The position numbers were made by a program, and so were the translations under genes. From positions 5,015,886-5,079,885 of the forward strand of contig BFEA01000003.1 of NCBI GenBank assembly GCA_003427395.1: 64,000 nt of DNA, in the 5' to 3' direction. The stretch comes from Chara braunii. Lineage: Eukaryota > Plantae > Charophyceae. Positions 35,290-60,796 of the stretch are shown here, in pieces; within the stretch, counting starts at the first letter, position 1; each line of letters opens with the position of its first letter. A model generated the notes under the pieces. That model saw nothing but the letters and a program-made list of their open reading frames with translations, searched no databases and had not been told where the DNA came from.

Positions 35290-37623
35290 AGAGGATGTGA
35301 GTGCCAAGCTTGTAGCAAAGTTCTTTACAACCTTGGCTACGGAGAAGCAACCACATTCAACGGGTTTTCGGAGACTGCTCCTTACCCCCTGGTCCAGCCT
35401 GGCTGAGCCTAAGACAGGCAAAAGGCAGCGCCATGAGAGAGTACAAGGCGAAGAATCAACGCGGATCCAAACAACCGCCACAACCAGCATAGCCTATGCG
35501 CAGGTTGGTGGACTCCTACAGGACCACCCACCCCACGAAGCTTGGATATACTTGGTTCTCCTCGCAGCGTACAGGCGACCACCCGCCTCCAAGACGCAAA
35601 CTCGACTTGGAACTAACAGTTGGCGCAGCATGGGAAACTCTCACTACAATTGAGAGTTCCATTGAATTTATCTCCGATCACAGGCCATTAGTAGCCAACT
35701 TTGAGTTGGCTGCCCAGCTGGTAAGGGAACCAGGCACATTCCGATTGAATGTGGAGCTGCTCAAAGCCCTAGGCATAGTACAATGGGTTGCAGAACATTG
35801 GGAGGGATGACACCACATAAGAGCAGACTTCGATGCGAAGGAGGATTGGTTGCAGATGGGGTTCAGAGTGGTCACAAGGGCACGCATCCAAGCTAGGGGC
35901 AGAAGGCAAGAAGAGCAGAAATGGAGGGACGTTATTACAAATGCAGAAGCAGAGTTAGACAAGAACCCGCTCACAGAACTGTACTGGCAGCACCAGACAG
36001 ATAAAGCCCTACAAGAGCTGGAGGAGATCAAGGTGAAACAACAAGTACTCTGGGCCAGCAGGGCACAGGAAAGAGGAATGACTATCAGCGATAGAATGAC
36101 AAAGGAAACGTTTCAACGAGTATGCCCACCATGAAGGCACTCCCTCATGAGAGAACTGCATCATCCTTTCTATCAGGAAGCAGCACCGACAAAGGACTCT
36201 GAAGCAATCGGGGAATACGCACTCACATACTTCAAGGACATTCTCACTTCAAGGAGACAACCCGATCAGCCGCTTCAGCAGCTAAGGGAGGAGCACGACT
36301 TGTGGCATCATACTCAGGCAAGACTGTCCCACGACGCCAGACAACGATTGGAAGAGCCACTAACGCTGGAGGAAATAAAGCAGGTTGTCAAAGCCATGGT
36401 CAAGGGAAAGTGCCCCGGATCAGCCGGCCTTCCAGTGGAGTTCTATGAAGCAAACATGTGACCATATAGGGTCCATCTTGCTTAATAGCTACAACGTAAT
36501 TCTCCAGTGTGGCTCGTTAACTGAGGATATGAAACTCGACATCAACGCTCTAATCTACAAGAAAGGTGACAAGTGCAACGTGCGCAATTGGCCTCAACGT
36601 TTCTTATAAGATTATCGCCAAGGTCCTGGCCAGAAGACTGACTCCTCATCTCTCAACGTTGGTATATACAGACCAAGGTGCTTTCGTTCAGGGCAGATCC
36701 ATCGCGGAGAACATGATGATGGCAGCAAGTGCGTTTGAGATCAGCCAAAAGGAAGACAGGCAAGTGATGGTGTCAATGCTTGACCTTAAAAAAACTTACG
36801 ATCGAGTTAACTGGTGGTTTGTTCTGGCCACACTGGAGCACCTGGGTTTCTGTCCCATCTATAGACGTTGGGTCAAGGAGCTCTATACAGGTGTTGCAGC
36901 CACAGTTAGTGTCAACGGATTCCTATCTCAAACATTCTCACTCACACAATCATTGCGTCAGGGATGTCCACTCGCATCACTGCTCTTCACTGTTCAAATG
37001 GAGGTTCTTTTGAATGCCCCCTGAGCCTCCCCTCACATTCGAGGCCTGGGCCTAGGAGATGGTGATACCATGCTAACCGGCGCCATTTCTGATGACCTCC
37101 TGCTCACCATGGAGGCAGAACCAGAGTCCATAAGCAAAGCCAAGGTACTGCTGGATTCATATGCGCAACTGTCGGAGGCCAGGGTAAATTGAGATAAGTC
37201 TGTATACTTCATACCAGCAAGATACGATCTCCCAGGACCAGACTGGGGCATGAAACGAGTTTCGTAGGAGGTGTCAGAAATATATCTAGGTATGCAAGTC
37301 TCCCTCACTAATGCACAGCCGAAGCAACAAGCCCTCCTCCGAGCTAAAACACAGACCTGCATACAGCGATGCAGAGTAGCAGTGGGAATTTCACTTTTCA
37401 GTCGAGCGTTGTTACTCACCTCTGTCGTTTTTGCTCAACTTTGGCATGTCGCAGCAGTATGCCTGATTTCCAAGCCAACAGCTAAGACGATCATCGCCGA
37501 TGCCGCCAGGTATCTTTGGAGGCCAACAACACATGAGGGGTAGAGATTCGTCTCCAAATGTGCTTGGATAAAGGTAACAACGACGAAAGCACAGAGGGGA
37601 TTGGGAGTCATCGACCTGCAGAA
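35290..37623 (+). pseudogene. L1/Tx1-type LINE ORF2, 5' part (APE endonuclease end plus RT), decayed
   Basis: LVDSYRTTHP..GYTW, SDHRPL, KCPGSAGLPVEFY, YKIIAKVLARR, QGAFVQGR, LDLKKTYDRV, LRQGCPL, ISDD, YLG, GLGVIDL. Confidence 0.9.
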
Positions 37624-38031
37624 AACGGTATTTTCGTTATAAGTGAAATTGTTTTCATGTTCACTTTTTTTTTTTTAACTGTAAAATGGCAGAACGAAAT
37701 GAGGAAATTATAGATGAAATAACGACAAAGCAAAATAACGACAAAGCGAAATAACGACAAAGCAAAATAAGGACGAAACAATGTTCATATATCAAAGCTT
37801 AGTAATGCAAACGACAAAATGATGCTCATATATGAAAAGTTGAAGGAAAAATTTAATGTGACAGTCATGATTATACAAGTTCAAAACAATCATGCTCCCG
37901 TGTTGCTTGTGCTCAAAATATAATACAATGTCAAGTTCTTACCTCGAATGTTTACACTCAGTAAACATGTCAATCTCATCAACAAAATATTAACCACGGA
38001 CTACAGCTTTAGTCACGCCTCATTGGCTTTC

Positions 38032-38799
38032 CTATCTAACCATGAACAAAATGTCAAATGTTATTCTAAGCCTCATATCAGAAATATTGGCTTGTGAGAA
38101 AGCAAATGGAGGGAAGTGACCTCTTGCAAGCAAAGATGCAAAACCTAACATAAAAACACCACAACTACAATGATCCTTTTGAGCAGGAATCCCATCTACT
38201 GATGTATCAAAGTAGGATGTAGGCCCGTCCACGTGATCTCTTTCGTGAAGATTATGTCGATGAAACTCCGCTTCGAAAAAATCTTTCAAACGTTCAAGGA
38301 CTGAAACATAGTCAACACGAGGGAGAGAGTCTATTAGGTGGAATTTACAGTTCGAACCGTCTATGCTGACATAAGTTAAGGCCTAGTGATTTCCAAAATG
38401 AAGAGGGATAATCACTAAGTCATAATAAAAAAGATTTGTGTCCTTCACCCATTTCATCCCTTCGGAATATGCGGTTTCAAACCTCGAAGCACCTGACAAT
38501 CGAGTGAAGAAAAAGAAATTGAAAATGTACACAAAAGGAACACTACATGAGTTTTTATGATCTCTTGTCACTTCTGTATATGCAGAATCAACCTTGATGT
38601 AGTCATTGGTGATCTGGACAGCTAGCAGGTACAAATTGACGACTTTGTCATTTAACCATTTCCCATCCTTGGCAACGACCATGATGTCTTCCTTTCCCAT
38701 CTTCCAGCTCCCCTTGTAATTGACAATGACGTATGCTTCATTGTCTTCGCTGCTGCCTGTAATCATGTCAAGATACTCATTTCTTCTACGGTGAGGCAT
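38032..38799 (-). pseudogene. Ulp1/SENP (peptidase C48) SUMO-protease domain
   Basis: WLNDKVVNLY, FNFFFFTRL, IIPLHFGNH*(W to stop), IDSL, QKDHCSCGVF; His/Asp/Cys triad order is preserved. Confidence 0.9.
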
Positions 38800-39899
38800 T
38801 CTGTTGCTACAGGAATCTGGAACGAAAGGTCATGAACTGCATACAAACACACATATAAACAACAATGGAACGACTAAGACTTCATACAAAAACGAACTTT
38901 TCGTTATGTGATGTACGACGTAGACCCGAGTTCATGTTTTTTGTTGTCTATCTGTTTCGCTATCAAAGCTGTCATCCACAATAGATAAACTGCAACCTTC
39001 GCGATGCAATTTTTTCCCTTCTCTGAGGCTTATTCCAACAACTTTAAACATCCTTAGGGCAACTGGCATTATAGATGGAAATGTCATGGGTGTAAGTCTT
39101 CTTCTCTTTTTTTTTGGCAATAACGGTAAAGTTGATAAGGCTTGCAAGCCACAACGAATGATATTCTTCTCACTCTGCCTTTGCGAACGTACGTGCGTCG
39201 TTTTCCACAATTATTTTCGTCGCCCTGCATGTTCATCAATATAAAACGATAATGATTGACAAGACAAAACCTTATGAGTTTAAGTTCAATTTTCCACATA
39301 ATTGCAAATAATAGATACACAATATTCTACTTCATCACCGAGCGTACGGTTGCAAACCTAGGCAAAAAATTAGTTCCTATGAGATGAGTGTATGTAATAT
39401 ACCCCCTAATCCGCATATAGTATTAGATATTCCCTAAGAGATAAGTACGTGCTCACCTCGGTGGCTCACTAACACTTTGTCTTCAACACAACCTTCAATC
39501 GCACCATGAGATGACGCAAAAGGAGATTCGTCGATAGATATCACGAGGTTAGCAGACTGTTGTGCTTCTGATTTTGCAAGCATAAGTTCAGGCTGCACAA
39601 GTGTATGTTGCTCCCGTGTACTTAGTACTATATGTCCTTCATCCTCTTCGATGACCCGTACATTGACAGTTTCCTTTGCACCTGCAGGCAGCAGTCGCGC
39701 TTTCATTCTTCATGTCCAGAGAGACTTCATGCTCATCTTTCTCAGATGGCATATCCAACGATGGCATCTCGAATTCTGCAAGTGCACCAGTATTATCCAC
39801 TTGTGTAGTAACACTCTCGCTCGCCAACACAGTGGTCGCCCAAACTTGGTCATCCGAAAGGACCTCCTCGACACATTTCGGCAGTTCTCCATGACTTAC

Positions 39900-40310
39900 G
39901 CCCTTAACGCTTGCACCGCCGCTTGCTCCCAAATCCTTGCCACTTGCATCGCCTCTCGATCCCGTGCCATGTGCACCGCCGCTTGGTCCTAATCCCAGAG
40001 GCGAACCCGATCCCCTGCAATGTGCACCGCTGCTTGGTCCTGATCCCAGAGGCAATCCCGATCCCTTGTCATGTGCACCGCCGCTTGGTCCTGATACCTT
40101 TCCCTCTATTGCTTGACGCCCTTGACACATTTCGTGTTTTTGCAGTTCACCAGAGTTATTGGCTTTCCACTTGCACCGACGCTCGGTCCCAGGCCCTTGC
40201 CACTGGCACCGCCCCGTAGTTCCGATCCCTTGCCATGTTCACCACCGCTTGATCTTGTTCCCTTGCCACGTGCATCGCCGCCTGATCCTGATCCCTTGCC
40301 ACGCGGATCG
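39900..40310. repeat. Coding tandem repeats (GPSGGAH..GSG)
   Basis: Repeated tgtgcaccgccgcttggtcc...gatcccttg units. Confidence 0.8.
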
Positions 40311-43300
40311 CCGCTCGCTCCTTTCCTTTCCCCAACTTTGTCTTGAAGTTCCTCTTCGATGCGCCAATTATATCCAAAAGCTGGACTTGTTTCTTTATCA
40401 TAGAACTCTTCCAGATACTCAAGCCATTGAGATATTTTGAACTCCGTAAAAGTTTCTTATCTCCTTGCATCCAGTCTTGATTGAGAAACCTTCAGATTAA
40501 GTCGCAGTAGTCGCTTGCCAATTTGATTTTTGGCGTGTGTGACAAACTTGGATTCTGGCATACGTCTGTGGAGGCAAAATTGTCACTTTCCTTCTTCTTT
40601 TATAGCCATTACCCAGTTCCCTCTCGCCAATGCAGGTTGGAAGTGGTGGGGGTGCCATATAATGTGATGACTCTATACGTCGCCAGGCATCACCGTATAA
40701 TCGTCTCGGCACACAATAGGTCCAGGGAAGCTGTGCAATGTCCGGAGGGATCCTGTCTCCAATCTCGTACTCCAAAGGCTTGGACGGAGGTTGTTGTGGA
40801 GTTTGAGAGCGTAGCAATTCCAAAACAACAGTCGGGCTATGTGCAAGTGCTGATAGACTTGCAATAATCTCTGGGGAGAGCATTGGTTGCACCCTCGGAC
40901 TCGGGCCATGTGCGAGTGCTGACATACTTGCAATAACCTTTAGGGAGAGCATTGCCCGCACCCTTGGATCATCCCGAACTGCGCCGGAAGGTAGCGCTGT
41001 TGTGTTGCCCGCCATGTGAGAAGGTTTAACTTGCACAAGAGAAGAAGTTGAGGGACGATTCGGTAATTGGCCCGTTGAAACTGCCATACTTGAAGCCTCT
41101 CCACAACCGGACGATGTGCCCGACGCACCCATCTTCTGCGAAGCCGAGCTACAAGTTTTTTGCCTCTCATCTGCGAAAGCCGCTTGCAAAGTACCATCTT
41201 CACTTTCTTCTTCTGAGTCCTCAGCATCAAAGCCTTCCCCAAAACAAGTTGCATAAGCTACGATTGTAAACGCCCCGATGTGTTCGTCGAAGTACATCAT
41301 CTCCAAACGGTCTAAAAATGTAACTTCCGTCTTCGTCGGTGTCTTATGATACCCCCTCAGAAGTGATTCCATTTTTCGCCTTCTGGCGACATATGCACGT
41401 TCCCCTCTGTTTTGTGGCTTAGTCTCGAAAAGGAACTCCCAAATGTTGACGATGTTTTGGCCGACTTTGTAGACGAGATCACGCCTTTCATCATGTTGAG
41501 GAGGCGGCTTAATAAATTTGGCGTAGTAACCTCCAGTCACGACCATCCTGTTGACGAATGAACGAGAAACTCGAACTTCATACCCTCCCCTTCCATAACA
41601 ATGCAATGACGGTGACTCTTTAACAACTCCCAAATCAACGCCGCATGACCTTTTCCCAAGAAAACAACCGCCTCATCCGCAGGACAAAAATGCTCCAATG
41701 TCTCCACCATCGCATTTGACTCCCTTTCCATACCTTTGTACACAAATTTCTCCTTTGGCTCCATACATGTCATTTTCAACTTCGTGGGCGTGAAGTTCTT
41801 CTCCACGACATCAGTCAACATCTTTGGCTTTCTCTCCCTGCGCACAAGTGCTGATAAGTCACCCGCCTGCTCGCCAGATGATCGATCTGCAACTGGAGTG
41901 CTTGCTGGAATGTCTTCAAGCAAGGGAATAGTGTTGCGGTGATAATCCCCATCGTTGGAGTACATGATGACAGCCATTCTGTCTGTGTCCTCCAAAGACA
42001 AGTTCGCAACCTTATATGAATGCTTCGCCTTCGTTTGTTGCTGATGAGTCCACTTTAGAATAGACAAGTGAATGTCCCAACGTGTAACTCGCTTGAAAAA
42101 TGTAAACTCGCAAGACCGCGGAACGAAGCACAATAATGTCCAATAATCACCACTCAGTTTTCCCATGAACTTCCATAGACCATGAAAGACTTCTTCAGTC
42201 CACATTCCCATCTGGGTTGAGTGACACAAATCCAGCACGGCCGTGTGGCAACTCAGATGTTTGACAACTCTATATATTTCCTTGGAATCCATTTCGTCTG
42301 AAATATCGCCTGGCTCTCATTGGAACGGGACGAAAACATACTTCACGTTCTGTTTTTGGAAATGTATATATTTTGCTGTGTCCGACATTCTTATGCTTTG
42401 CGAACCCCTGGTTTCTGATCTGCGCAGCAGCTTGTTGACAATAACACGTAGGGCCCGAGGGCGTTGGACCACTGGCCGCTCCATTGAGTAGTAAGGGACA
42501 TGTCAACCAAATGATTAATCCTGGTCAAACGAAGAGTCTCTCCTGCAAACTTTCTATAATCTGTATTTTTCACTTCCGCCGCAGAGCCGCCTTTAGCTTC
42601 ATGACAGTTCGATACGTACCACAACTTCCGTATGTTCTGGATGACCACGATCTGGTGCGGTGGGGTATTCCATTTGTCCTTCGCGTTCTGGAAAGTGCTC
42701 AGCGTGCCGTAATTGTCCATGCTCTTACCCGGATAGTAAACAGGCCTCGCAGTCCAGCGATCCAATCGGAGTTCTTGTGCGATGCCAGGGCATTCAACAA
42801 AACACCTTCTTGCCGTCGCCACGTTATGCTGACCGCTGAGAGGGTAGTAGTAGTACTTGTTCACAGAGCCGAGGTCGAATTCATTGGGCAACACCCTCCT
42901 TGCTCTCACAATCCTCCTTGAAGTGTCAGTATGCATTGTATCATGGAGGGCAACCAACAAAAGGACAGGCTTTTCATACAATGTACAAACATTTACACCG
43001 GCAGTTCCAATCGTTCTCTCTCTGATAGCAGCCTCACCCGATGCAACCATTGCGTCATAAATGTCATCAATCGTCTGTTGCACAAGATAGTGTTGATTGT
43101 ATCTGAATTCCCCGTCGGGGATATCCAGAATTCTGTCGAACTTGACATAAATGAATTCCATATCTGGACACTGGTTCCCATGCTCGTCCAACTCAAGGAA
43201 GAAGCCTTTGTTGAGAACACCAGAAGAAGTCTCCGATGATACATTTCGCAAACTTGGCGGCCTATTAACTGTCTTGCCTTCGGCCTCTTCATCCGATTGT

Positions 43301-43569
43301 GGTTGTTCTGCTGGAAAAACGGAAGTCTTTTCCATGACACCACCCTTTGCCGTTTTTTTCTTTGGCTGCTGCTTTTTCTTCGTGGCTGCCTCAGTCTCCC
43401 GTGTGCGCTGGACCGCCTCATCCACGGGCAATAGTTTCAATTGTCTTTTCTGACCCGCTTCCTGCTTACTCCGTTTACTATCCAAAGCACTTCCCCTCTC
43501 CTGCCTGTGCTTCCTCTTTCGCTCGGCGAGCCTTGCAGCATCTGTATGCGCAGTCACAACCACTGTCTC

Positions 43570-43917
43570 GTGGTGCACCCCCCCTCGTGTTGGATGCACA
43601 TCTGCCTCACATCCTTCGTTGTTGCCCCCATATCCCCCTACCATACCAACCTCTCCACCCAATTCGTTGATAGTGTGCTCAGTGTCTTCATCCTGTCCAA
43701 CCACTTTACTTGTTTCCCCATAGCGCCTCGTCATGTCACCGACGTGGTGCACCCCCCCTCATGTTGGATGCACATCCGCCTCACATCCTTCGTCGCTGCC
43801 CCCATATCCCCCTGCCAGACCAACCTCTCCACCCAATTCGCTGATAGTGTGCTCAGTGTCTTCATCTTGTCCAACCACTTTACTTGTTTCCCCATAGCGT
43901 CTCGTTATGTCACCGAC
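43570..43917. repeat. ~174-bp tandem duplication in the cargo gene
   Basis: gtggtgcacccccc..tggatgcacatc...tttcccatagcg..tcg.tatgtcaccgac occurs twice. Confidence 0.85.
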
Positions 43918-45194
43918 ACCCACCGCATACTGTTCCTGTCCTCCTGCTCATTCTGAATATTCCTCGCCGTTCTCGTCATCATCATCCGAGTCTTCAAAAT
44001 ATTCATGGGCTTCCTCTGTGCGGCTTGGCACAGTGTAGTCGCAGCGCTGCTGGCCCACCAAGGGGAGAGGTCCCTTGGTGGCTGCTGCATAGCGCGGTTG
44101 GCTGCCCAAGGCAACTGGTGCTTTGGTTGCCGTTGGCCTGGACGTCACAGGGGCTGACGGCACGATCAGTCCGCGGTACGGACCCTTCTCTCCAATCTGC
44201 CCAGCTTTCGGACTCGGCGGTGTGTCGCGGATCGTGATCGAAGGCCCAGTCTCCACGGTTAGCACGCATTTAGGCTCCGGTATGCGGTCTTTTGGATGCA
44301 CAACCGGCTCTTCGCCCGCGATTACATTACTGTCGAAAAACCCGAGGACGTCGTCGAGCTCAGGCAACTTCACTTTCGTACTCTCTGGTGTGTTGAATAC
44401 ATCAACGAGCGACTTGCCATATCCTGCGTGTTTGGCCCATCGAAGAGCGACGTGTTTAACATTCGACATCCTTTCCCCTCTTCCATTCAGGACCATCGTC
44501 AACTCGAACATTGCAGACGAAGCATCTTGTCCAGTCCACCTCACCAGACCGCCAACCAGCACAATACTTTCTTTATGACCACGTATAGAACAAGGCCACT
44601 CGATGGTTCTTCGATCTCCCCCACCCAGTCCAACATCTAGAACTTGTCCTTGTGATCAACCACGGGCACATCGTCCCGCCGACCCGCGGTAGTCGTTTCA
44701 CCAGACGGTTTATGTCCGAGCACAACGTCCACTGCAGATCTTCCCTGCCGAGGACCAGGCATACGTTCCTGACCCGCAGACCCGCCAGTCATCAACACAG
44801 CCTTATCCGGAACACGAGTCGACGGAGTGTTTGTGGAAGGTGCACCCCTCGGAACCGGAGTGCCTGTGGAAGGCCCAGTCCGTGGAACCAGAGTGCCTGT
44901 GGAAGGTGCAACCCGCAGAACCGGGGTGCGTCGACTCTTAGTTCCCGGTGTCTCCTGACTCCCCCCTCCAGCGGTCGGTGTCCCCTTCGATTTCTTCGGA
45001 GATTGGTCCATGCTCCCAAAACTCTTACTTGCTCGTCATTTACTTGCCTTCCCCTCTCGTTCCATGTTTTGCATCGTTGCCGAATCTGAAAGCAACACAA
45101 CACATCACCGCAAAGCCAAATATCAGAAGGTCGCCCAACATTGGCATGGCACGACGAGTAGAAAAGTGAAACGTTTTAGATAGTGGTAAGGCAG

Positions 45195-45525
45195 TGCAGC
45201 TCGATCGTGGCAAGGCAGCCCCGGAGACGGAGTTCGAATCGACCACGATCGTGTTCAATTCAACCGCGATCGTGCTCGCCTGGACTCGACCGTGTTCGAC
45301 GCGACCGTGTTCGTGTTCGACTCGATCGTGTTCGACTCGATCGTGACGGGCCAGCTCGATCGTGTTCAACTCGATCGTGGTGGGCCAGCGTGACCCAAAA
45401 GATCGTGATCGTGGCGGGCCATGACCCAGCTCGATCGAGTTCGACTCGAACGTGGCGGGCCAGCGCGACCCTCGAGGCCAGCTCGATCGTGTTCGACTCG
45501 ATCGTTGCTGGCCATCGTGATCAAT
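45195..45525. repeat. Array 1 of CpG-rich pseudo-palindromes
   Basis: Repeated tcgatcgtgttcgactcgatcg variants. Confidence 0.85.
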
Positions 45526-45562
45526 CGAGGCACACTGCAGCCGGCTATCAACAAATGCACCG

Positions 45563-45900
45563 CTATCAATTCAGAATTCAAAGCCTACATCCATTATCAA
45601 TGCCAAGCATTCAATTGGCAACGCATGCAATCGACACCCACAACGAGCGNCAATTCAGAATTCAAAGCCTACATCCATTATCAATGCCAAGCATTCAATT
45701 GGCAACGCATGCAATCGACACCCACAACGAGCGATACACAGTCTCTACGCATGTAATCGACATCGACCGATGCACCGCAATCAATTCAAAATTCAAAGCC
45801 TATATCCATTATCAATTCGAAGCATTCAATTGGCAACGCATGCAATCGGCACCCACAACGAGCGACACACAGTCTCAACGCATGTAATCGACATCGACAA
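45563..45900. repeat. Three tandem copies of an ~80-115-bp unit
   Basis: caattcagaattcaaagcctacatccattatcaatgccaagcattcaattggcaacgcatgcaatcgacacccacaacgagcg x3; one junction has an N, so this may be partly an assembly artefact. Confidence 0.8.
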
Positions 45901-46013
45901 TCTCACATCAAACTTACTGCTCCCATAACATACATAGTCTCAGTTCACACTCTTGCTGAATAGCTCACATTTCTTACACTGTTCATCTCCCACGACCTCT
46001 CCCACGACCTCGT

Positions 46014-46889
46014 CTATCGTTTAGCCCTGAAACCGTACAGTGCGTCCAGGGATGAACCGTACGTCAGGAGCTGGGGACTAGACAGGGTAGCAGTGGCGGA
46101 GAAGCGAGACACGTATCGCACTCGGACGAAACCACATGTTCTGGCTAAAGTGTGACCGATGGCGTCTCGAATGACCGTCACGTACTCCTCGACCTTCTCC
46201 CAATGCCGGGGTGCGTCAACCAGCCCCGCCAATTTCACGTCAAACTTACCGTTCCTATAACCATGCGGTACCAAAATCGTGTCCCCGTCAACGATGAGCT
46301 CGTTTCTGGACACGTAAATAGCTGCCTCCGCTGAAGTCTTACTTCTATTTCTTACCGAAACACACAGAACCCTAGCGAAAGGGAAACGATAGAGTTCAAC
46401 ATGCACGCAGTAGTACGACACACTCCCCGTCAAGTTGTCCTCGAAGGGAAGGGGATATTTCTCTAGAAACTGGTTGTATTTCGCACAATCCAGCAACTCC
46501 TCCTTCATCGATGGTCCCCACAAGCGCGGCGAACACGACACGTTGTGCGCACTCAACGATAAAGACAAGCCTCGGGTACAAAATGCTGCAGACAACCTCG
46601 ACGTGTGTTTCGTCACGAGGATGTGGTCGAGGAAGATGAATGTCCCCCATTCCTGGCTGGAGACAAGTCGATAATCAGACGCCCATGGGCAGTCTTTCAT
46701 GGTGTTCTCCCAGTCTAACTCGGACCATGCATCAAAAGGCCTGTCAAACCAGGGCACAACGCTCATCCAAGGGTCTGATTCGAAGTCATCTCTTCGAGCC
46801 CCAAGTACAGTAGTCGCCTCCCTTGAACCCCGCATGTACGACGCACTAGCATTCAAAGGGAACGAGTAATCGAACCAGTGATCCATCGC
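46014..46889 (-). CDS. Orphan ORF inside the transposon (~290 aa from MDHWFDY)
   Basis: Uninterrupted, compositionally globular ORF; the track ORF extends to 47123. No family recognised. Confidence 0.55.
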   Translation of the reverse strand, partial: AMDHWFDYSFPLNASASYMRGSREATTVLGARRDDFESDPWMSVVPWFDRPFDAWSELDWENTMKDCPWASDYRLVSSQEWGTFIFLDHILVTKHTSRLSAAFCTRGLSLSLSAHNVSCSPRLWGPSMKEELLDCAKYNQFLEKYPLPFEDNLTGSVSYYCVHVELYRFPFARVLCVSVRNRSKTSAEAAIYVSRNELIVDGDTILVPHGYRNGKFDVKLAGLVDAPRHWEKVEEYVTVIRDAIGHTLARTCGFVRVRYVSRFSATATLSSPQLLTYGSSLDALYGFRAKR

Positions 46890-47079
46890 GAATGTCCTAC
46901 ACACACAAACGATTGACGACCACAACAAACACTCAGGGAACGAGAGAGCCATTGCTAAGGTCGAACCAATGTCACACACACAACAAGGACCCGTCGCAGT
47001 CGCGAAAGTCGTACACACAACAAGGAGCCATTGCGAATGTCCAATACAGAAGGAGAAGACACACAGAACGACAAGCGAG

Positions 47080-47572
47080 GCGAACTCGACGGCCATCGTT
47101 GTGTTCGTCTCGACAAAGGCCATCGGCGCCTATCCATCGTCGAGTTCGAATCGACGACGGCCAAGGCCAGACGGCCGTCATCGAGTTCGAATCGACAACA
47201 GCCCAGCATCAAGACCTCTGGCCACTGTCGAGTCAAATCCTGACGCCCACCGCCAAGGCCTCTGGCCATTGTCGAGTCGAACTCGACGACGGATGAATCG
47301 ACAACAGTGGCCAGACGGCCGTCGTTGAGTTCGACTCGACAGTGGTCAGACGGCCGTCGTCGAGTTCGACTCGACAGTGGCCAGATGGTCGTCATCGAGT
47401 CGAACTCGACGGTCGGCCAGCGCCAAGGCCTCTGGCCATTGTCGAGTCCGACTCGACGATGCCCGCAGGTCGTTGTCGAGTTCGACTCGACCGAAGGCCG
47501 TTGTCAAGTTTGACTCGACGATGGCCATAGGCCTTGGCGCTGGTCCACCGTCGAGTTCGACTCGACGACGGC
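47080..47572. repeat. Array 2 of pseudo-palindromes GTCGAGTTCGACTCGAC
   Basis: Example at 47359-47375; more than ten variant copies in both orientations. Confidence 0.9.
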
Positions 47573-48629
47573 CTCTGCGAGGGCGGAAATGCCACGTGGC
47601 AGCACGTGGTTGCTTCACGGGGGTTTACCGTTCTCCCAGGTCTCCGCTGCTGCCTTCGATGCGAATGCTCGGAACTTCGCTCCGATGCTGCGCAAACCTC
47701 CAATGTGCGAGTGGGAGCTCCGTTGCATTCTGCGCAAGCCTCCGATGTGCGAGTGAGCACTCCGCCGGGCTCGGACGATGCGCGCGAACCTCCCCAGCGC
47801 TCTGTCGTTCTCGACAAACTTCCAGAAATGGAAAATGGTGGGCCCACACCACTATTTGTACTTTCTGTGGAGGGCAGAATGGACGCTCGGCACAGCCGTC
47901 CGATCGCGAGATCTTGACGGTTGGGGTGTCCGGCAGTGCGGCCTGCGGGGTGTGGATTCGGGTCCCGGTGCCGCGGGGGAATCGGTGCCGCGGGAGCAAC
48001 GTTTCGGGTCCAGGGAAAGTCTGGGCCGTCGATCCGTCAGCTGAGGGCCAGGATCTGGTACGGGGAAAACCGGTGCCGCGGGGAGAATCGGTGCCAAGGG
48101 GGCGACGATTCGACTGTCGGTGCCTTCCGCGACTGTTTAAACGGGCTCCGCAGGTGGATCCAAGGGTCTTTTTCCTTGCGTCGCTCCCCGAGAAAAGTAC
48201 CGGTGCAGTGTCACCTTCGCGTCGACACGACAGACAGCTGCATTGCTCCGCCACGGTAGCCGCGTTGCTGCTCCAATTCGTGCCTTCTTTGACCCAGGTG
48301 AGTTCAGAATCCACACCGCCCCCNNNNNNNNNNNNNNNNNNNNNNNNNNNNNNNNNNNNNNNNNNNNNNNNNNNNNNNNNNNNNNNNNNNNNNNNNNNNN
48401 NNNNNNNNNNNNNNNNNNNNNNNNNNNNNNNNNNNNNNNNNNNNNNNNNNNNNNNNNNNNNNNNNNNNNNNNNNNNNNNNNNNNNNNNNNNNNNNNNNNN
48501 NNNNNNNNNNNNNNNNNNNNNNNNNNNNNNNNNNNNNNNNNNNNNNNNNNNNNNNNCCCCCCCCCTCCCTTTCGTCATTTGTGGTTTTTCAGGACGGCAA
48601 CAAAATTTCTCCGACAGTTCACAGAGGCG

Positions 48630-49260
48630 TCCATCATCGACTCCGACACGACGACCGTTGTGTTCAACACGATGACGGACGAGCATGGACATGTTCACCA
48701 CGTGTTGAACACGACCCCACCGTCGTGTTCAACACGATGACGGTCGCTGTCATCGTGTTGAACACGACCACGGTGGCTCGCCACGACCACGCAGTCGTGT
48801 TCAATACGATGACGGTCGTGTTCGACACGATGACGGTCACTGTCGTAGTGTTGAACTCGACCGCGGTGGCTCGCCGTCGTGCCGGTGATCGTGTTCAACA
48901 CGATGACGGTCGAGCGCAGACATGTTCACCTAGAAAGCACCGTCGTGTTCAACACGACCACGGTCGCTCATCGTCGTCTTCGACACGACCATGGTGGCTG
49001 TCGTGCAGAGACGGGTATCGAGCGCGACATAACGACGGTCGAGCGCGGAGATGTTGAACATGACCACGCCGTCGTGTTGAACACGATGACGGTGGCAGTC
49101 ACCACGTGCGCCTGTCGTGTTGTGCAATGCGATGATGCGTCGTCGTGTTCAACACGAACGCGGCGGCAAATCATCGTGTTCAACACGACAGCCGGCGACT
49201 GTTCAACACGACATCCGTCGTCGTATTCAACACACAGTCGGTCGACGTGTTCGAGTCGGT
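48630..49260. repeat. Array 3 of pseudo-palindromes GTCGTGTTCAACACGAC
   Basis: Example at 48942-48958; more than ten variant copies. Confidence 0.9.
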
Positions 49261-49486
49261 CGCCATGTCTCTCGTGCATCGCTTCTGTTGCAGACTGTGT
49301 TTTTTTTTTCCGCCTTCACGGGGCTGATCTTTTACATCAGCTGTGTGTGGCTAGCAGTGGCCGCGCTATACCACATGTGTTGCACTCTATATATACCGCA
49401 TGTGATCCATCTAGTTGTGGATTTGTTACTGATATACATGTTTTGTGCCAGTGGTCCACTGTTTTGTCATCGCAGAAACGTTTTAA

Positions 49487-52306
49487 ATGGCTTGTGGTGG
49501 GCACGCACCACGACAAGCTGCCAGCACAACTTTGGAAAGCATGGACTGTGTGGCATCTAATATACTGCCTAATGATGAATTTCCTCCGCCGGACCTGCCA
49601 ATGTTTTCACAATACGTTCAAATAACTCCAGAATCTCCTGATCATAAAAGGTCCCGGATGGCTGCATGTGAAGAAACCACATGCAAAAGTGCATCTCCAG
49701 CCTTGGGCGGGCCAGTGAAAACCTCTGATGTAGAAGGTTCGGAAGGTCAGGGTAGGGCCTGCTCCGGTGACAAGAACACATCCGATGTAGATCGTATCAT
49801 GTGCGTGCCGAGAAGTTCGCTACGAGATTTCAAGTGCACAGGCCTTCTGTTTGACGAGAGTGATGAAGATGGTTCGGAATCAGGTTCTTCGATGTCATAT
49901 GATGCCGACAGTTCTCCAGACAAAATTGATTATCCACAAACTTGCGATAGTGATGCCACTGATCTTTACTGCCGCAACGATATGGAAAATTCTGATGTCG
50001 TCTCTGATTTTGATGACATTTTTCCAAAACGTTTGTCGTCTGAGAAGCGTCCTTATACTTTCCGTATCTGAATGTCGCAGTCAAAGAAGATTCTGCAAAC
50101 AGTTCACAGAAAGCTCACCAAAAAAACACCGTCGAGTGTGCGTGGACAAGTTTGTTGTAAACGTCAAAGCTGTCCGGAGTGCATAATACTCTAAGGATCA
50201 CAAAAGTAGAGATGCATGGTGGGTTGAAACGTTAAAGAGGTTCACCTTCGTGGAAGATGAGAAAAAGATTGTACAACCTATTGTAGAAAAAAGAAAGGTG
50301 TGCATTAGTGCATGGTGTTTCACACTTGGTGTGTGCAGGAATACATTTTTGAAAAAGAGGATGACTTTGTCAAAAGGTTACATTATGCCGGAGCATGGCA
50401 ACATTGGACTCAGACGCACATCTGCAACATATGCGATGATGTACGAAAAACTAAGCTCCTTTGTGCGCGATAATGGAGATTCCATGCCCAATGACATGAG
50501 AATCAAAGATGGGGAATCACGAGTGGTTTTGAGATTGCCTGCTTGCTATAACAAGGTTGACATTTACAAGTTGTTAACATGGGTGTCCCTTCTGTTTCTC
50601 TCCAAGAAGAAGAACACACTTCTGACATGTGAAATTTCATGAAGAAACTTTGCAAAATGCGAGAAGTGTGTTGAGTTCAAAGAATCTATCAATTTTGCGA
50701 AGTTCGTACGTGTGCGTGAGTATTTTGTTTCGGAACGTGAAAAACACTTGGACTTGCATCTCCAACATCGTGTTGCTTATGAGGTGTGGAATGATGAGTC
50801 GAGGAGACCAGATTCCAACAGTTTATGCATCATTATTGACGGTATGGACCAAAGCAAGACAAGTATTCCACACTTTGGCGGAGAAAACAAGTCGAAGGCA
50901 TTCGCGAATATTCCGATGATGAAAACACATTTAACAACTATTATCGCGCACGGTCGTTCACCGTCTGGCCATGTTCACACATGGTACCCTTGCTATCCAC
51001 ATGATTCCAATGTTGTGGTGTCATCCATTATGAAAGTTTTGCGTGACATACAGGCGACAAGCGACTTACCTCCTAAATTGAGGATACAAGTTGACAACTG
51101 TTGGGGAGAAAACAAAAACAAATACGTTTTCTCTGTGGCCGCAGCTTTGGTGAAATTGGCTTCTTCAAAGAAGTTGAATTCGGTTTTATGTTGGTAGGAC
51201 ATACACATACGGACGTTGATGCCACTTTCAGTCATTTCTCTCGCAAACTGAAAATGCGCGATCCTTATACCATGCTCGACCTCTTCAAACTCGTTCCCAG
51301 TTCCCAAAAAGAGCGTCCTTTGTGCACATTCATGGACGAAATTGTTGACTGGCGGGGAGCTGTTAAGCCCTTCCTGGTCAACAGACTGACCGGTCATACT
51401 AAGCCACATTTATTTAGGTTTTATATGGAGGATGACAATCTTGTGTTCCGGTGGAAAGAGTATTGCACTTCTCCGGTCTATTGCTTTAAACGAGATGAAA
51501 ATAAAGCATATGCTGGACCCGAATGGCCATTCGAGCCTTCACCTGTTATCCCATCACCTATTCGAGCTGTTAAAGAAACATCACGTAGTCAGCCCACTAA
51601 GGATAAGAATTCGAATTTCAAATAAGGAATTGAAGGCGTGAAGACGTTTGTTGAGTGGTTGGAAAACAAGCAGCACGAGTGGTTGGGAATGAAAGATGAG
51701 GTTAGCTTCTCAAATGAGAGTGCTCTTTCTCACTGGAAAAATTTCGTGGACACAATCGAGCAAAATTATGGGTCTGGCTTTGCGAAAACATCACTTAAGG
51801 CTGGCTTTTGGCCCTCGCAGGACAGAATTACGAAGGACGATGCTGAGGATATTGATATTGCCTTCCTCTTCGAAGAGTCGTTGTTCGTTGGGTCAGCCAA
51901 TGAGCGTCCAAAAGCAGAGCTCGACCCGGTTGTGGATGTCGAAAAGGGTCAACTCGTTCTCTTGCGTCCTTCGCAAGATGATATCGATCAGGGAGTTCCC
52001 GTGTGGATGGGTAGAGTCATTTCTGATATTGACAACGATAGGAAGTCGCCTGCTTTCAATCATGTTTTTATTGAATATTGGGTGCCACAACCTGTCGTCA
52101 AACATCTTTCTCTGCAATATGCAAATGCATGGAAGAAGATATGGAAGAAAGACAGCACAACAGCACAACAGTGGCAGCACGTGGACTGTGTTTTGTGGAG
52201 CTGGTCATCAAGGATGTTACATTTGAAAAATGGAGTGCACATTCCCAAATCAGTCAGAGAGAAAGCCTTGACATGTCTTTCACTTCCCGATGATGAAGAC
52301 CCGTAG
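49487..52306 (+). pseudogene. DDD transposase, Sola1-like (frameshifted), with C-terminal SH3/Tudor-like segment
   Basis: VCISAWCFTLGV, EHGN, GDSMPN, IIIDGMDQSK, IQVDNCWGENKNKYV, FMLVGHTHTDVDATFS, GQLVLLRP..VWMGRV..VFIEYW. Confidence 0.82.
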
Positions 52307-53726
52307 GATAAGTCACTGAGAAGACCTCATTTCGTGCGTGTTGGTGTACCATTTACTTGTCATTGAACTTCCATTCATATATAGTTAAACTATATTGCAT
52401 TGGCTTGCCTTTTACTTCCCGATGATGAAGATCAATAAACTTTAAGTACGTCGTTGAGAAGAGGTAATCATATTTCATTTGAGCGTATTGCTGTATCATT
52501 TAGTTGTCATTGAGCTTCTGTATTTCATGTGTTGCAGAATGCTTCATTCAACGACTGGATGACCGCCAAGCAATATGGTGTGAGACAGAAATGTATGGCA
52601 TGATATGGGGTCTATCTTTTTCACACCTGAAGTGGTTTTCGATGATGCAGTACTCAGTGTCAGAGGTGTGGATGTCGCACCGGATTGCTGGGAGCATTAT
52701 CCTCGACAATGTTTGTATATTTGTGGTCGTAGGTGTTGTAGAACAAGAGAATATCCGCGATAAGCGTTTGCACCGTACTCAGAATTGTACTATTCAGCAG
52801 TGAAGTTCTACCACAACGACTTCAAGCTGATGACCAAATGCTGCAAACTTTCTTTTCTTATTCATAACGATTATTCTACAAGTGCAAACATATTCAATGC
52901 ACATGACATCGACGGATGAAGACGGGAAGCATTTCCAAGGAGGATCATGGACCAACCGTTGCTCAAAGCACTCGTGGATGGGCTCGTGGACACAGCGATT
53001 ACATATGTACGAAGTCTTCTGCTGCGCAAGTATGAATTCATAGAAACTTACGTAGAGTACAAGGAACCCACATTCGATGGTCACAATGAGACGAACACTG
53101 TAGAAGATTTGACAATTTACACGAGGAGAGCGTTAAATTTATCACGCAGATCGTATTAATATGTTCATTACGTACTATATCTGATTCAAGTCGATAACCT
53201 TAGAATATCGTTTTCAAGTGTTATATGCCTAGTAGTCAAGTCGATTTCAATTATAGCCTAAGGACTTTGACGAAGATTTTGACAATGTGTAATTTTAAGA
53301 GTTCATAGATGCACCATTGAGCTGATGTAAGTGGCACAGTTTTGCTTTTAATATAATTGGACTTTTGCATTAAATTTTCCTTTCACGGTCTCCATATGAA
53401 GGGTGTTGTTATAGTTTGAAACAACTTAAGGTCTTGGACTTTAGAGAGCTGCATTAAATTTTCCTTCCACTGCGCTTTGTTTGAATTTGTTAACTTTCTG
53501 TAGAGGGTTTTACAAATTTCGCTATTCTTTCCTTCACATATGATGTCATTCTTTTCGTTTATATTCTAATTGTTTCGACACTTCTCCGCTCAAGGTTTAC
53601 ATTGTGCCGAAATATTAAAATCCTCTTATTTTGTTCTACAATTTACCTTTTTTTCGGTTACTTTATTAATTTCATTATGCTCACTTTTTACAAAACAGTT
53701 CATTTTTAACGAAAACATCGTTAAAA

Positions 53727-57714: not shown

Positions 57715-57886
57715 CTTCGCCACTTCAGGATGCAGCCTGCCTAAATAGGTGGTTTTCAGGGTCTTCGGACCTTTCACCACTTCAGGACCATTCAAGTCTG
57801 AAAATCCTGAATGGTCATGAAGCGGTGAAAGCCCCGAAGACCCTGAAAACCACCTGTTTAGGCAGGCTGCATCCTCAAGTGGTGAA
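57715..57886. repeat. Long inverted repeat (~80-bp arms, 13-nt loop), with further direct copies to ~58065
   Basis: cacttcaggatgcagcctgcctaaataggtggttttcagggtcttcgg... vs ...ccgaagaccctgaaaaccacctgtttaggcaggctgcatcctcaagtg. Confidence 0.9.
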
Positions 57887-60796
57887 GTGCGGTTTTCATG
57901 GTCTTCGGACCTTTCACCACTTCAAGACCATTCATGATTTTCATATTGCCAAAAACTCTCACTTGACCACTTCAGGACACCCTGCACCACTTCAGAATGC
58001 AGCCTGCCTAAACAGGTGGTTTTCAGGGTCTTCGGACCTTTTACCACTTCAAGACCATTCAAGATTTCAGACTGCCAAAAACTCTCACTTCTGAATTTTC
58101 ATTCCTGAATTTTCAGCTACCCGATAACCGCTTGTGACCGGGCCACACCCTATTTTGCATTACGTATTGTTTGAAGTGCGCAGTATGTCTGTCACATTAT
58201 ATGATGTTGACCTTGGTTGTTTTTCGTGCACATTATGTTTTTTTTTTGTTTTTTATTTTTTTTATTTTTCATTATGTTGCAAGATTTTTCACGATAGCGG
58301 TGCGACTTTGTATTGCTTAACAAGGCCCAACGAGGGGTAGAGACACGCTGTGTCTTTCTGGCATTGCTTGCATACATCCTCCAAATAGTAACCTCAAACA
58401 CATGTTCACATTGTGAGATCATCCCTGTGCATGCAATCAACGACCAAACAATGAGGACCTACCATCAATCACACTTGACACAGACGTCGTGACACGGACA
58501 GTGACAATACAAGAACAATGATGTGAAATTGTTACGAGAAGCAATGACAACAAGGAGTGCGATCATCTCAAATTTTGTTTGTCACTTGTTCGACACCAAA
58601 AACAAAAAAAAGAACGTACTGTCGTGTTTGATAGATTTCGATCCAAAAGACCCCGCAACAGCAAATACACGCCTGCGTCATTAACACCGTGACTCAAAAA
58701 CTGTCCCGTGCGGACAGACCCCATACTACCCCCCGACCCTTCGACACAAGACCACACATAAACCGAAGCTTCGTGCGAGAGACACGAACAACTACACTGG
58801 AAGGACGAGATGGCGACTATCTATTTATAACCCTCTATTTAATGCAACATTATTTAGAGTCGGTGGACGAATCAAACTCCATACTCATTGACCTCCGAAG
58901 GTGATCTGCAACAACTGCCACATCATGCCGGTTCGCGTCCGGTGACATGGTCGGGAATACTGATGGCGACCTACCATCACAGGGCATGGACACATGCCTG
59001 TCTGGAGGTGTCCGATATGCATTGTCCGGAACCAAATTGTTGAGGGAAACGGTGACGCTCGCGACGGTCCCTCATCGCTTACCCCAAGGGCTCTGCACAG
59101 TGCTGACATAGTCATCACGATCCAGCCATGAATTTTGCGACTCCCCTTCGTACATTGCCAATTGCTGCTCTAAACGTGCCACCTCATCCTGCAACACAAT
59201 AATCGTCCTCTCTGCAGCTTCTGCTTTGGAAACTGCCACACCCTCTCTCATGGCAGCCTTGTCCACCTCCTCTCGCAAACGCTTCAACTCCTCGACCATA
59301 GCGGACACGCGTGTGAACATAACACCTCTCTTGCGTGCGAGTTCATGTGCTTGTTGAATCATTCGTCTGTGGGTCAACGTGAAATCACATGCCATGTCCA
59401 CGACTTCGCTGACGCCACGAAGCGGAGAGGATGATATCCCTCCTTTATGTCATCGTTCCACCCCCCCCGACCAGATACCTGCAACAAGGCCATCACGCCC
59501 GCCACATGCGGATGGACAACTGTCAGATGGATAGCCCCNNNNNNNNNNNNNNNNNNNNNNNNNNNNNNNNNNNNNNNNNNNNNNNNNNNNNNNNNNNNNN
59601 NNNNNNNNNNNNNNNNNNNNNNNNNNNNNNNNNNNNNNNNNNNNNNNNNNNNNNNNNNNNNNNNNNNNNNNNNNNNNNNNNNNNNNNNNNNNNNNNNNNN
59701 NNNNNNNNNNNNNNNNNNNNNNNNNNNNNNNNNNNNNNNNNNNNNNNNNNNNNNNNNNNNNNNNNNNNNNNNNNNNNNNNNNNNNNNNNNNNNNNNNNNN
59801 NNNNNNNNNNNNNNNNNNNNNNNNNNNNNNNNNNNNNNNNNNNNNNNNNNNNNNNNNNNNNNNNNNNNNNNNNNNNNNNNNNNNNNNNNNNNNNNNNNNN
59901 NNNNNNNNNNNNNNNNNNNNNNNNNNNNNNNNNNNNNNNNNNNNNNNNNNNNNNNNNNNNNNNNNNNNNNNNNNNNNNNNNNNNNNNNNNNNNNNNNNNN
60001 NNNNNNNNNNNNNNNNNNNNNNNNNNNNNNNNNNNNNNNNNNNNNNNNNNNNNNNNNNNNNNNNNNNNNNNNNNNNNNNNNNNNNNNNNNNNNNNNNNNN
60101 NNNNNNNNNNNNNNNNNNNNNNNNNNNNNNNNNNNNNNNNNNNNNNNNNNNNNNNNNNNNNNNNNNNNNNNNNNNNNNNNNNNNNNNNNNNNNNNNNNNN
60201 NNNNNNNNNNNNNNNNNNNNNNNNNNNNNNNNNNNNNNNNNNNNNNNNNNNNNNNNNNNNNNNNNNNNNNNNNNNNNNNNNNNNNNNNNNNNNNNNNNNN
60301 NNNNNNNNNNNNNNNNNNNNNNNNNNNNNNNNNNNNNNNNNNNNNNNNNNNNNNNNNNNNNNNNNNNNNNNNNNNNNNNNNNNNNNNNNNNNNNNNNNNN
60401 NNNNNNNNNNNNNNNNNNNNNNNNNNNNNNNNNNNNNNNNNNNNNNNNNNNNNNNNNNNNNNNNNNNNNNNNNNNNNNNNNNNNNNNNNNNNNCCTCTGC
60501 TCCCTGCTGTCCACGTAGCGAAGCACCGTGACATGTGCTTCGGGTACCTATATCAGTGACCTGCAAGAAGGCCATCATGCATGGCACATGGTGGTGAGGA
60601 CATATGTGAGATGGAGACGGCTATGGATGGGAGACGTACATAATGAAAAAGAGAAGGAAATCCAAACACCACACCAAGAACGGACGAAGCATTGAATGAA
60701 AAAAAAAATAAAAAAAAATAAAAAAAAATAAAAAAAAATAAAAAAAAATAAAAGGACGTGAATCTGTCCGACGATAAGCACTTGGACATGGTGTCT

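Follow-up and report, generated by a model that had tools for sequence, protein, structure and literature searches.

What do short, CpG-rich repeats do when they stand in tandem ahead of the genes of a giant transposon? The question is raised by a 64-kb stretch of the genome of Chara braunii (contig BFEA01000003.1; "the window" hereafter means the whole 64,000 nucleotides analysed), in which a dead copy of a giant DNA transposon carries three arrays of one motif. The arrays lie upstream of a transposase gene, of an orphan gene, and of a cargo gene whose product is predicted to contain a domain of the ParB/sulfiredoxin (Srx) type. We propose that they are putative binding sites for a sequence-specific protein encoded by the element itself, an interpretation that we hold to be moderately probable.

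With up to two mismatches allowed, the motif GTCGWGTTCRACWCGAC has 42 matches in the window, where 0.06 are expected from dinucleotide-preserving shuffles, and the sole match outside the three arrays is at position 24945. A relaxed scan with the 15-nt core gives limits of 45234-45501 for array 1, 47075-47565 for array 2 and 48637-49188 for array 3, and Tandem Repeats Finder stretches array 3 to 49252 by taking in degenerate copies. The motif count and both scans thus bear out the array coordinates of an earlier note on this DNA (Table 1). The dominant variant accounts for 12 of the 14 sites in array 3, for 11 of the 12 in array 2 and, as the hybrid TCGTGT-TCG-ACTCGA, for 6 of the 8 in array 1. 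The interval from array to start codon is 184-223 bp for the cargo gene (ATG at 45011), about 190 bp for the orphan gene (conserved ATG at 46886) and 235-300 bp for the transposase gene (ATG at 49487).

Table 1. The element, its genes and its arrays; positions are those of the window unless a further locus (L001 to L005) is named.
Feature	Coordinates	Strand	Remarks
Whole element	37624..53722		Dead giant DNA transposon copy, about 16.1 kb; homology to L001/L003 and ends like terminal inverted repeats (TIRs)
Ulp1 (C48) protease-like gene, pieces	38383..39706	-	Pfam Peptidase_C48 at E 0.011, below the Pfam cutoff
Cargo gene, several open reading frame (ORF) pieces	40497..45011	-	N-terminal region, predicted ParB/Srx-fold domain (42394-43215), methyltransferase-like region
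Array 1	45195..45525		About 8 copies; asymmetric hybrid core TCGTGTTCGACTCGA, single orientation; 5' of cargo gene
Orphan gene	46014..46886	-	About 290 amino acids from the conserved ATG; conserved in all copies
Array 2	47075..47572		About 12 copies; palindromic core TCGAGT-TCG-ACTCGA; 5' of orphan gene
GC-rich spacer, array 2 to array 3	47573..48629		About 1 kb; 86.6% identical to L001 4987-5956; contains the assembly gap
Array 3	48630..49260		About 14 copies; palindromic core TCGTGT-TCA-ACACGA; 5' of transposase gene
Transposase gene (DUF7869)	49487..52306	+	Pfam DUF7869 divided between two overlapping ORFs that differ in frame
Array 1 counterparts	L001 9310-9593; L003 8727-9356		Same core; 23 copies in L003
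Array 2 counterpart	L001 5723-6739		27 copies
Array 3 counterpart	L001 4395-4876		Same core
Array 4	L002 15432-15835; L004 15024-15392; L005 23200-23562		Same core motif

Six further C. braunii copies (L001-L006) were located through annotated paralogues of the cargo (cargo 53-88% identical). Together with the window copy they fall into subfamily A (window copy, L001, L003) and subfamily B (L002, L004, L005, L006), whose cargoes are about 61-66% identical over their aligned parts. Arrays of the same 15-nt core stand in all six, in the same intergenic positions, and the order is throughout transposase (-), array 3, spacer, array 2, orphan (+), array 1, cargo (+), Ulp1 (+). Three of the four subfamily B copies (L002, L004, L005) have a further array, array 4, between the cargo and Ulp1 genes, a region that lies under runs of unassigned bases (N) in L006. 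The placing of arrays 5' of the cargo, orphan and transposase genes, as first noted in the window, therefore holds and extends to a fourth gene, Ulp1, in subfamily B. About 170-330 bp separate the arrays from the ATG of the cargo gene in all copies, and the same holds for the ATG of the orphan gene, of Ulp1 in subfamily B and of the transposase in subfamily A. Apart from the stray match mentioned above, no core matches were found in the flanks of the L001-L006 loci or in the remaining 48 kb of the window. Across the window and seven loci, the arrays all lie at homologous places in element copies. On the DNA covered, they belong to the element family rather than to a generic satellite, and the motif is dense in the non-coding DNA of its own family and rare elsewhere, as are the targets of the VANC proteins considered below. 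A scan of metagenomes for two adjacent cores gave a single match (L010, 2545-2615 of contig Ga0170475_114640918), where four to five tandem 15-bp units of the hybrid core TCGTGTTCGACTCGA stand at the end of a high-GC, bacterial (actinobacterial-looking) contig; this match is taken as a coincidence.

The arrays turn over rapidly. Copies per array range from 6 to 60 and vary two- to fivefold between element copies; array 2, for example, has 12 in the window, 27 in L001 and 28-60 in subfamily B, as described for VANC targets. These counts are minima, since assembly gaps in the other copies fall in or beside arrays (L002 3804-4733 and 6501-7015; L004 4524-4778), and the arrays seem to break the assembly. 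It is appropriate, then, to ask whether they are merely minisatellites without function, descended from a slippage-prone ancestral near-palindrome that has been expanded, contracted and homogenised. The copy-number variation and the gaps are what such a history would produce, and all copies seen are dead. Against it stands the 15-nt core, which has been kept in seven array lineages, in repeat units of 15, 18, 21, 28 and 35 bp with unrelated spacers, while the other non-coding DNA has become unalignable. Between the transposase ATG and the cargo ATG, blastn of subfamily A against subfamily B finds no similarity except one 186-nt match inside array 3. The central non-coding DNA of the two subfamilies shares 61-89 12-mers, against about 2 expected, and 51-58 of these derive from the motif (at least 8 nt of the core). 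In the two arrays of the window and L001 that can be aligned base for base, the core has 6.1% substitutions and the spacer 10.3% (pooled p=0.04), counting substitutions only; the difference is weak, as expected in dead copies, and its modest size leaves the minisatellite explanation some room. The similar distance of the arrays before most genes and the matched change described next speak against functionless repeats, which we regard as decidedly unlikely.

A sister family, L007, whose cargo is 36-39% identical, has upstream of its cargo ATG an array of the site GTCGGAT-TCG-ATCCGAC (GTCGGATTCGATCCGAC), with 16 matches against 0 expected. This site keeps the 7+3+7 design with its outer GTCG, its T at arm position 7 and its TCG centre, and has changed at positions 5-6 in both arms. 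Like VANC targets, the sites evolve as tandem repeats with family-specific motif variants. Because the core is kept where other non-coding DNA is unalignable, and because L007 has changed symmetrically, we read the motif as the site of a factor encoded by the element. A host transcription factor is the obvious rival for that role: the element may have accumulated clusters of its sites to drive the element's genes, for instance in one cell type. Enhancers typically hold homotypic site clusters, and a position about 200 bp before each ATG is like that of upstream activating sequences. However, apart from the stray match, neither the locus flanks nor the 48 kb of the window beyond the element yielded core matches, the altered site of L007 is more easily explained by a factor evolving with the element, and to our knowledge the core contains no recognised plant cis-element. 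Host-factor sites are, in our view, rather unlikely.

The earlier note held that compensated variants preserve the dyad. This is so for arrays 2 and 3 of the window copy, but array 1 and the largest arrays of subfamily B are hybrid. Judged by arm position 4, 143 of the 400 sites in the seven copies are palindromes (102 of T-type and 41 of A-type) and 235 (59%) are hybrids. The largest arrays, those of array 2 in subfamily B (28-60 sites), are almost wholly hybrid, and the hybrid arrays all share one direction relative to the downstream gene. The conserved unit is thus two TCGWGT half-sites, inverted about a 3-nt centre, with no strict palindrome, and the A/T arm position is tolerated, not compensated. 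Palindromic sites do fold, with a 7-bp stem, a 3-nt loop and -6.3 kcal/mol, and arms reach 9-12 bp in portions of arrays 2 and 3, so that the conserved property might be thought to be structural: transcript hairpins or DNA cruciforms, serving as a source of small RNA or as a replication or recombination signal. Yet hybrids carry a mid-stem mismatch, a hybrid site of L004 has no folding advantage over shuffled sequence (-2.8 kcal/mol, z +0.6), and an Rfam search of the whole element gave no match. Since 59% of the sites are hybrids and the hybrid does not fold, the unit is a pair of half-sites and not a base-paired structure; a hairpin or cruciform is ruled out as the constraint, and we consider a structural role of any kind highly improbable.

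Could the arrays instead serve the transposase? They are central in the element, and might act as an internal enhancer that pairs ends 16 kb apart, as the internal activation sequence of phage Mu does, or as sites through which the transposase regulates the genes of its own element. Array 3, beside the transposase gene, is the sole array with the same type (TCGTGT...ACACGA) in both subfamilies, and a recent preprint reports transposases as sequence-specific activators of cognate copies (10.64898/2026.08.24.746577). The ends of the element, however, tell against this. The terminal 500 bp of either end contain no half-site, and the arrays lie 7.6 kb and 4.5 kb from the ends, not within a few hundred bp of the termini as TIR-related subterminal repeats would. 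The ends carry other repeats: both have the AT-rich, TIR-like sequence AACGRTRTTTTCGTTA, with TTTTCGTTA in the shared AT-rich part, and the left end carries subterminal AACGACAAAGC repeats. In addition, L007 and L003 have arrays beside the cargo and no transposase gene in the DNA examined, and inverted-repeat arrays also adjoin a ParB-like gene in red-algal elements, whose transposase is unrelated. We find transposase sites unlikely, and return to a dedicated, element-encoded DNA-binding protein.

The family linkage, the retained core and the symmetric change in L007 all fit the element-encoded binder proposed in the earlier note, which would probably be dimeric. The cargo protein is the candidate that we would favour. 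An exhaustive HMMER search gave 70 relatives of the cargo, 52 of which were aligned for an AlphaFold2 model; over ORF residues 180-453 the model has a predicted local distance difference test (pLDDT) score of 86. The best Foldseek rows are Noc, ParB and sulfiredoxin, at E 0.03-2. VIA-align superposes the model on ParB and Noc with Z 8.0-7.5 and a root-mean-square deviation of 2.3-2.9 A over 91-97 residues. Its top 28 rows are all chains of ParB, Noc, PadC, Srx or SbnI (Z 8.0-4.6, about 78-97 residues), with 7bnr_A among the top matches at Z 7.9, and unrelated rows have Z of 3.5 or less. Neighbours in the Atlas are clusters of DndB and of ParB_N, with or without a helix-turn-helix (HTH), at template modelling (TM) scores of about 0.4. 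These comparisons support a predicted ParB/Srx N-domain fold, so that the description "ParB-like" is sound at the level of fold, and the protein is not a demonstrated ParB. The conserved loop of the domain reads (S/A)GQHN. Comparison of 38-52 relatives shows little or no variation at its G, Q and H, and an invariant N is found about 48 residues further on, outside the loop. We take this loop to resemble the DGQHR loop found in DndB-type proteins. In the model, residues 186-266 form helices, and alignment with the ParB_N+HTH clusters of the Atlas extends to residue 245, with TM about 0.4.

Several points weigh against this interpretation, some against the arrays as protein-binding sites and others against the cargo as their partner. 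The copies examined are all decayed, so that selection has to be deduced from retention between families, and concerted evolution of tandem repeats can mimic part of that signal. In subfamily B, array 3 stands 1.3-1.7 kb from the transposase ATG. The more distant cargo families L008 and L012 (about 25-28% identical) have no arrays in readable upstream DNA, and two distant loci hold long N runs. As to the cargo, searches for a ParB-like domain by sequence with Pfam (window pieces, six paralogues and 38 relatives), NCBIfam, phmmer and a PDB sequence profile gave nothing relevant, and a Z of 8 is within the range that VIA-align flags as a possibly common arrangement. Solved ParB chains align over the N-terminal ParB/Srx domain only, and in true ParB it is the HTH that reads parS. 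The cytidine triphosphate (CTP) motif GERRxRA is absent, its homologous loop being (S/A)GQHN. The "parS-like loading" envisaged in the earlier note is not upheld: GQHN replaces the CTP-binding GERRxR, any HTH is a candidate only, and the domain goes unseen by sequence profiles.

L009 and L011, two environmental contigs (JGI metagenome 3300064063), encode relatives of the cargo that are 27-28% identical; no arrays were seen in them, on contigs too short to tell. In L009, a Peptidase_C48 (Ulp1) gene follows the cargo relative, and the pairing of cargo and Ulp1 therefore exists outside the C. braunii assembly.

What is directly seen comprises the arrays, their family linkage and positions, the conservation of the core, its symmetric divergence in the sister family and the ParB/Srx type of the predicted fold; from these we infer binding, the identity of the binder, its dimer state and the effect of binding. 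We propose that the arrays would form clusters of predicted binding sites in every intergenic, promoter-proximal region, through which one element-encoded factor could act on all genes at once. Two 6-nt half-sites (TCGWGT) inverted about a 3-nt centre, with half-site centres 9 bp apart, would suit a dimer. If the arrays do bind an element protein, the ParB/Srx-fold cargo protein is probably that binder, and the orphan protein would be the next candidate. The window copy, being dead, would be served in trans. By analogy with VANC, the likely outcome would be self-specific transcriptional activation or protection from silencing. It is tempting to go further and to see here a private recognition system: a ParB/DndB-like protein of bacterial type and palindromic arrays before each gene, co-evolving as site and protein (TCGWGT versus TCGGAT) and giving each family activation, or a shield against silencing, for its own copies only, an independent ParB-based counterpart of VANC in a lineage sister to land plants. 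This fuller scheme we put forward tentatively, as a possibility that may well prove wrong.

The relation of the arrays to methylation deserves comment. The idea in the earlier note that a bound protein keeps promoters unmethylated is, like parS-like loading, conjectural. The arrays have an observed/expected CpG ratio of 1.45-1.71, against 0.84-1.08 for neighbouring ORFs and 0.84 for the window as a whole; CpGs are dense in the arrays, as the earlier note had stated, and the three CpGs within the motif itself account for the excess. In the non-array parts of the element, CpG-to-TpG/CpA changes between copies run at about three times the rate of other transitions per base, which would be consistent with some cytosine methylation and with the remark in that note on the decay of the ORFs. 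In the motif arms, CpG and non-CpG positions have 20.5 and 20.7 changes per position, with transitions at 3.4% and 2.6%. The apparently slow decay of CpG in the arms would fit either constraint on the site or lower methylation, and is given little weight, as the comparison is not like for like. A search for published or public C. braunii methylome, chromatin immunoprecipitation or expression data found none.

The closest known parallel is with the VANC proteins of Arabidopsis VANDAL elements, which are Mutator-like. Hosaka et al. (2017, PMC5735166) found that VANC21 binds to arrays of YAGTATTAY in the non-coding DNA of the transposon that encodes it; the 9-nt motif forms fast-evolving tandem repeats, VANC proteins cause loss of methylation, and related families differ in motif (PMC5735166; PMC10398659). 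The Chara arrays share with these targets a short motif packed as tandem repeats in the non-coding DNA of one family, including upstream of genes, as well as its rarity elsewhere, rapid change in copy number and family-specific motifs. VANDAL elements also carry a further non-transposase gene, VANB. The VANB protein has an Ulp1-like domain. The text of PMC5735166 makes no mention of Ulp1. The systems differ in that VANDAL motifs are 9-nt long, non-palindromic and in one orientation, VANC is not ParB-like, and the transposon superfamily is another one; moreover, binding and methylation loss are experimental findings in VANDAL and putative in Chara.

In gene content, the nearest relatives are giant elements of other algae. 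Red-algal Plavaka elements, of the EnSpm type, encode PAG3, a ParB-like/2-oxoglutarate (2OG) oxygenase protein with adjacent tandem inverted-repeat arrays, for which the authors propose self-binding (Petroll et al. 2025, bioRxiv 10.1101/2025.02.11.637652). The best HHpred match of PAG3 is 7BNR (10.1101/2025.02.11.637652), the structure whose chain A also ranks high for the Chara cargo. As in Plavaka, the Chara element is a giant algal DDE transposon with a ParB-like accessory gene, detectable only remotely, beside tandem inverted-repeat arrays. Unlike Plavaka, it has its ParB-like domain joined to a methyltransferase-like region and not to an oxygenase, its transposase is of the DUF7869 type, its host is a streptophyte, and its arrays precede every gene (three to four per element), not just the ParB-like gene. 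In Sola1-1_Ec32 of Ectocarpus, 21.5 kb long, a ParB-like and DNA methyltransferase gene is encoded on the other strand from the transposase (PMC12477816). Compared by description only, this element resembles the Chara element in gene content, in the divergent orientation of cargo and transposase and in being a giant algal element; palindromes are not mentioned in PMC12477816.

Bacterial ParB-parS and Noc with its binding sites (NBS) invite comparison through the predicted ParB/Srx N-terminal fold and through 16-17-bp inverted repeats clustered near the gene; in Chara, clustered 17-bp sites of 7+3+7 design adjoin the ParB-like gene. In contrast to these systems, the Chara cargo is without GERRxR, any HTH or dimerisation domain would be putative, and many sites are asymmetric. 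The arrays hold tens of copies ahead of nuclear transposon genes, and a role in partition is not expected. In maize, TnpA of En/Spm binds 12-bp subterminal motifs in direct and inverted orientation, regulates the element promoter and counters methylation. A short motif repeated within the element is the common ground, with a binder that is putative in Chara. The sites of TnpA, however, are subterminal and take part in transposition, whereas the Chara arrays lie 4.5-7.6 kb inside the ends and do not resemble the terminal sequences. For this picture of TnpA we have also drawn on a preprint (10.64898/2026.08.24.746577).

The element itself can be delimited by its homology with L001 and L003, which ends at 37617/37624; the right end (53722) is placed by TIR similarity only. 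The ORF pieces of the cargo and of the transposase were searched separately. The two halves of the transposase share one frame in L002, so that the window gene has a frameshift inside DUF7869, near 51100-51200; the transposase is classed by its Pfam DUF7869 match. The cargo ORF of 453 amino acids at 42391-43752(-) has 13 protein matches, 53-88% identical and without exception from Chara braunii. About 0.66 kb that L001-L005 have, corresponding to residues 331-548 of the uninterrupted L007 ORF, is missing from the window copy at 42435-42460, where the ParB-like part meets the methyltransferase-like part. Given this deletion and the transposase frameshift, the window copy is judged dead on at least two counts. 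Relatives give clear Peptidase_C48 matches, and the Ulp1-like gene is conserved in L001-L004. The orphan ORF spans 46014-47123(-), and its homology starts at residue 77-102, so that the likely start is the ATG at 46886. Subfamily B copies all encode, at the same place, an orphan that is 36-40% identical in amino acids (tblastn), with conserved blocks in the alignment, and from this conservation we take the orphan to be a real gene. Pfam, a word search and the Atlas gave no match for its protein, and an AlphaFold2 model from a six-row alignment had a pLDDT of 38 and is unusable.

The spacer that separates arrays 2 and 3 contains a run of 233 N (48324-48556), which comes within 80 nt of array 3. 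On either side of this gap the window is collinear with L001, a copy about 90% identical: window 53434-48560 corresponds to L001 1-4953 and window 48323-47304 to L001 4987-5956. The two flanks thus follow one another in unbroken order and orientation. In place of the 233 N, L001 has 33 G-rich nt (4954-4986), and in the window C runs stand at both gap edges. In reality the gap is probably a G/C tract of a few tens of bases that is hard to sequence. It is outside the arrays and no conserved ORF crosses it; ORFs listed across it are artefacts of the N run.

Other descriptions of the repeats were considered and set aside. Arrays as coding repeats are ruled out, since a reading frame is not kept with periods of 28, 31 and 35 bp and the sites stand in either orientation. 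In the C. braunii gene models P0008, P0009 and P0010, the annotated N-termini are translations of arrays, with repeats such as IVESNT; these array-derived N-termini are likely annotation artefacts. Sites of methylase type, TCGA or GANTC, are ruled out as the true unit, since array 3 of the window (TCGTGTTCAACACGA) is without either. A common proximal promoter module is excluded too, the stretches of about 200 bp between array and ATG being unalignable among the three genes.

Further repeats occur in and around the element. Between the orphan 3' end and array 1, at 45547-45898, there is an 84/131-bp tandem repeat of two to three units, 90-100% identical; it includes the palindromes CAATTG and GCATGC and is kept in both L001 and L003. 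A 33-bp tandem repeat with CACGTG is found at 40194-40314, ahead of the Ulp1-like gene, where subfamily B has array 4. The N-terminal part of the cargo gene has a 174-bp direct duplication, 94% identical, at 43569-43917. Retroelement-like ORFs flank the copies, one a reverse transcriptase (RT) gene (Pfam RVT_1) in L005 1-1647 and the other an ORF at window 36566-37024 that we read as RT-like by eye; both are read as unrelated retroelement fragments. Outside the element, at 57715-57887, is an 80-nt inverted repeat, 91% complementary, with a 13-nt loop.

What, finally, does the locus add? The idea of self-binding has already been proposed for red algae, and the Chara finding is descriptive. New here are the host lineage, the fusion partner, the presence of arrays ahead of each gene, the logic of half-sites and a sister family in which the two arms have changed in step. 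Family-specific escape from, or tuning of, host silencing is known mechanistically for only a few plant elements (VANC, TnpA). If the arrays are indeed sites for the ParB-like cargo, this would be a second, independently evolved protein fold doing the job of escape from silencing, in a streptophyte alga close to land plants. With a 15-nt site, two natural half-site variants and a sister family changed in both arms, specificity and co-evolution are directly testable. It would also provide a function for the ParB-like accessory genes reported in giant transposons of brown, red and green algae.

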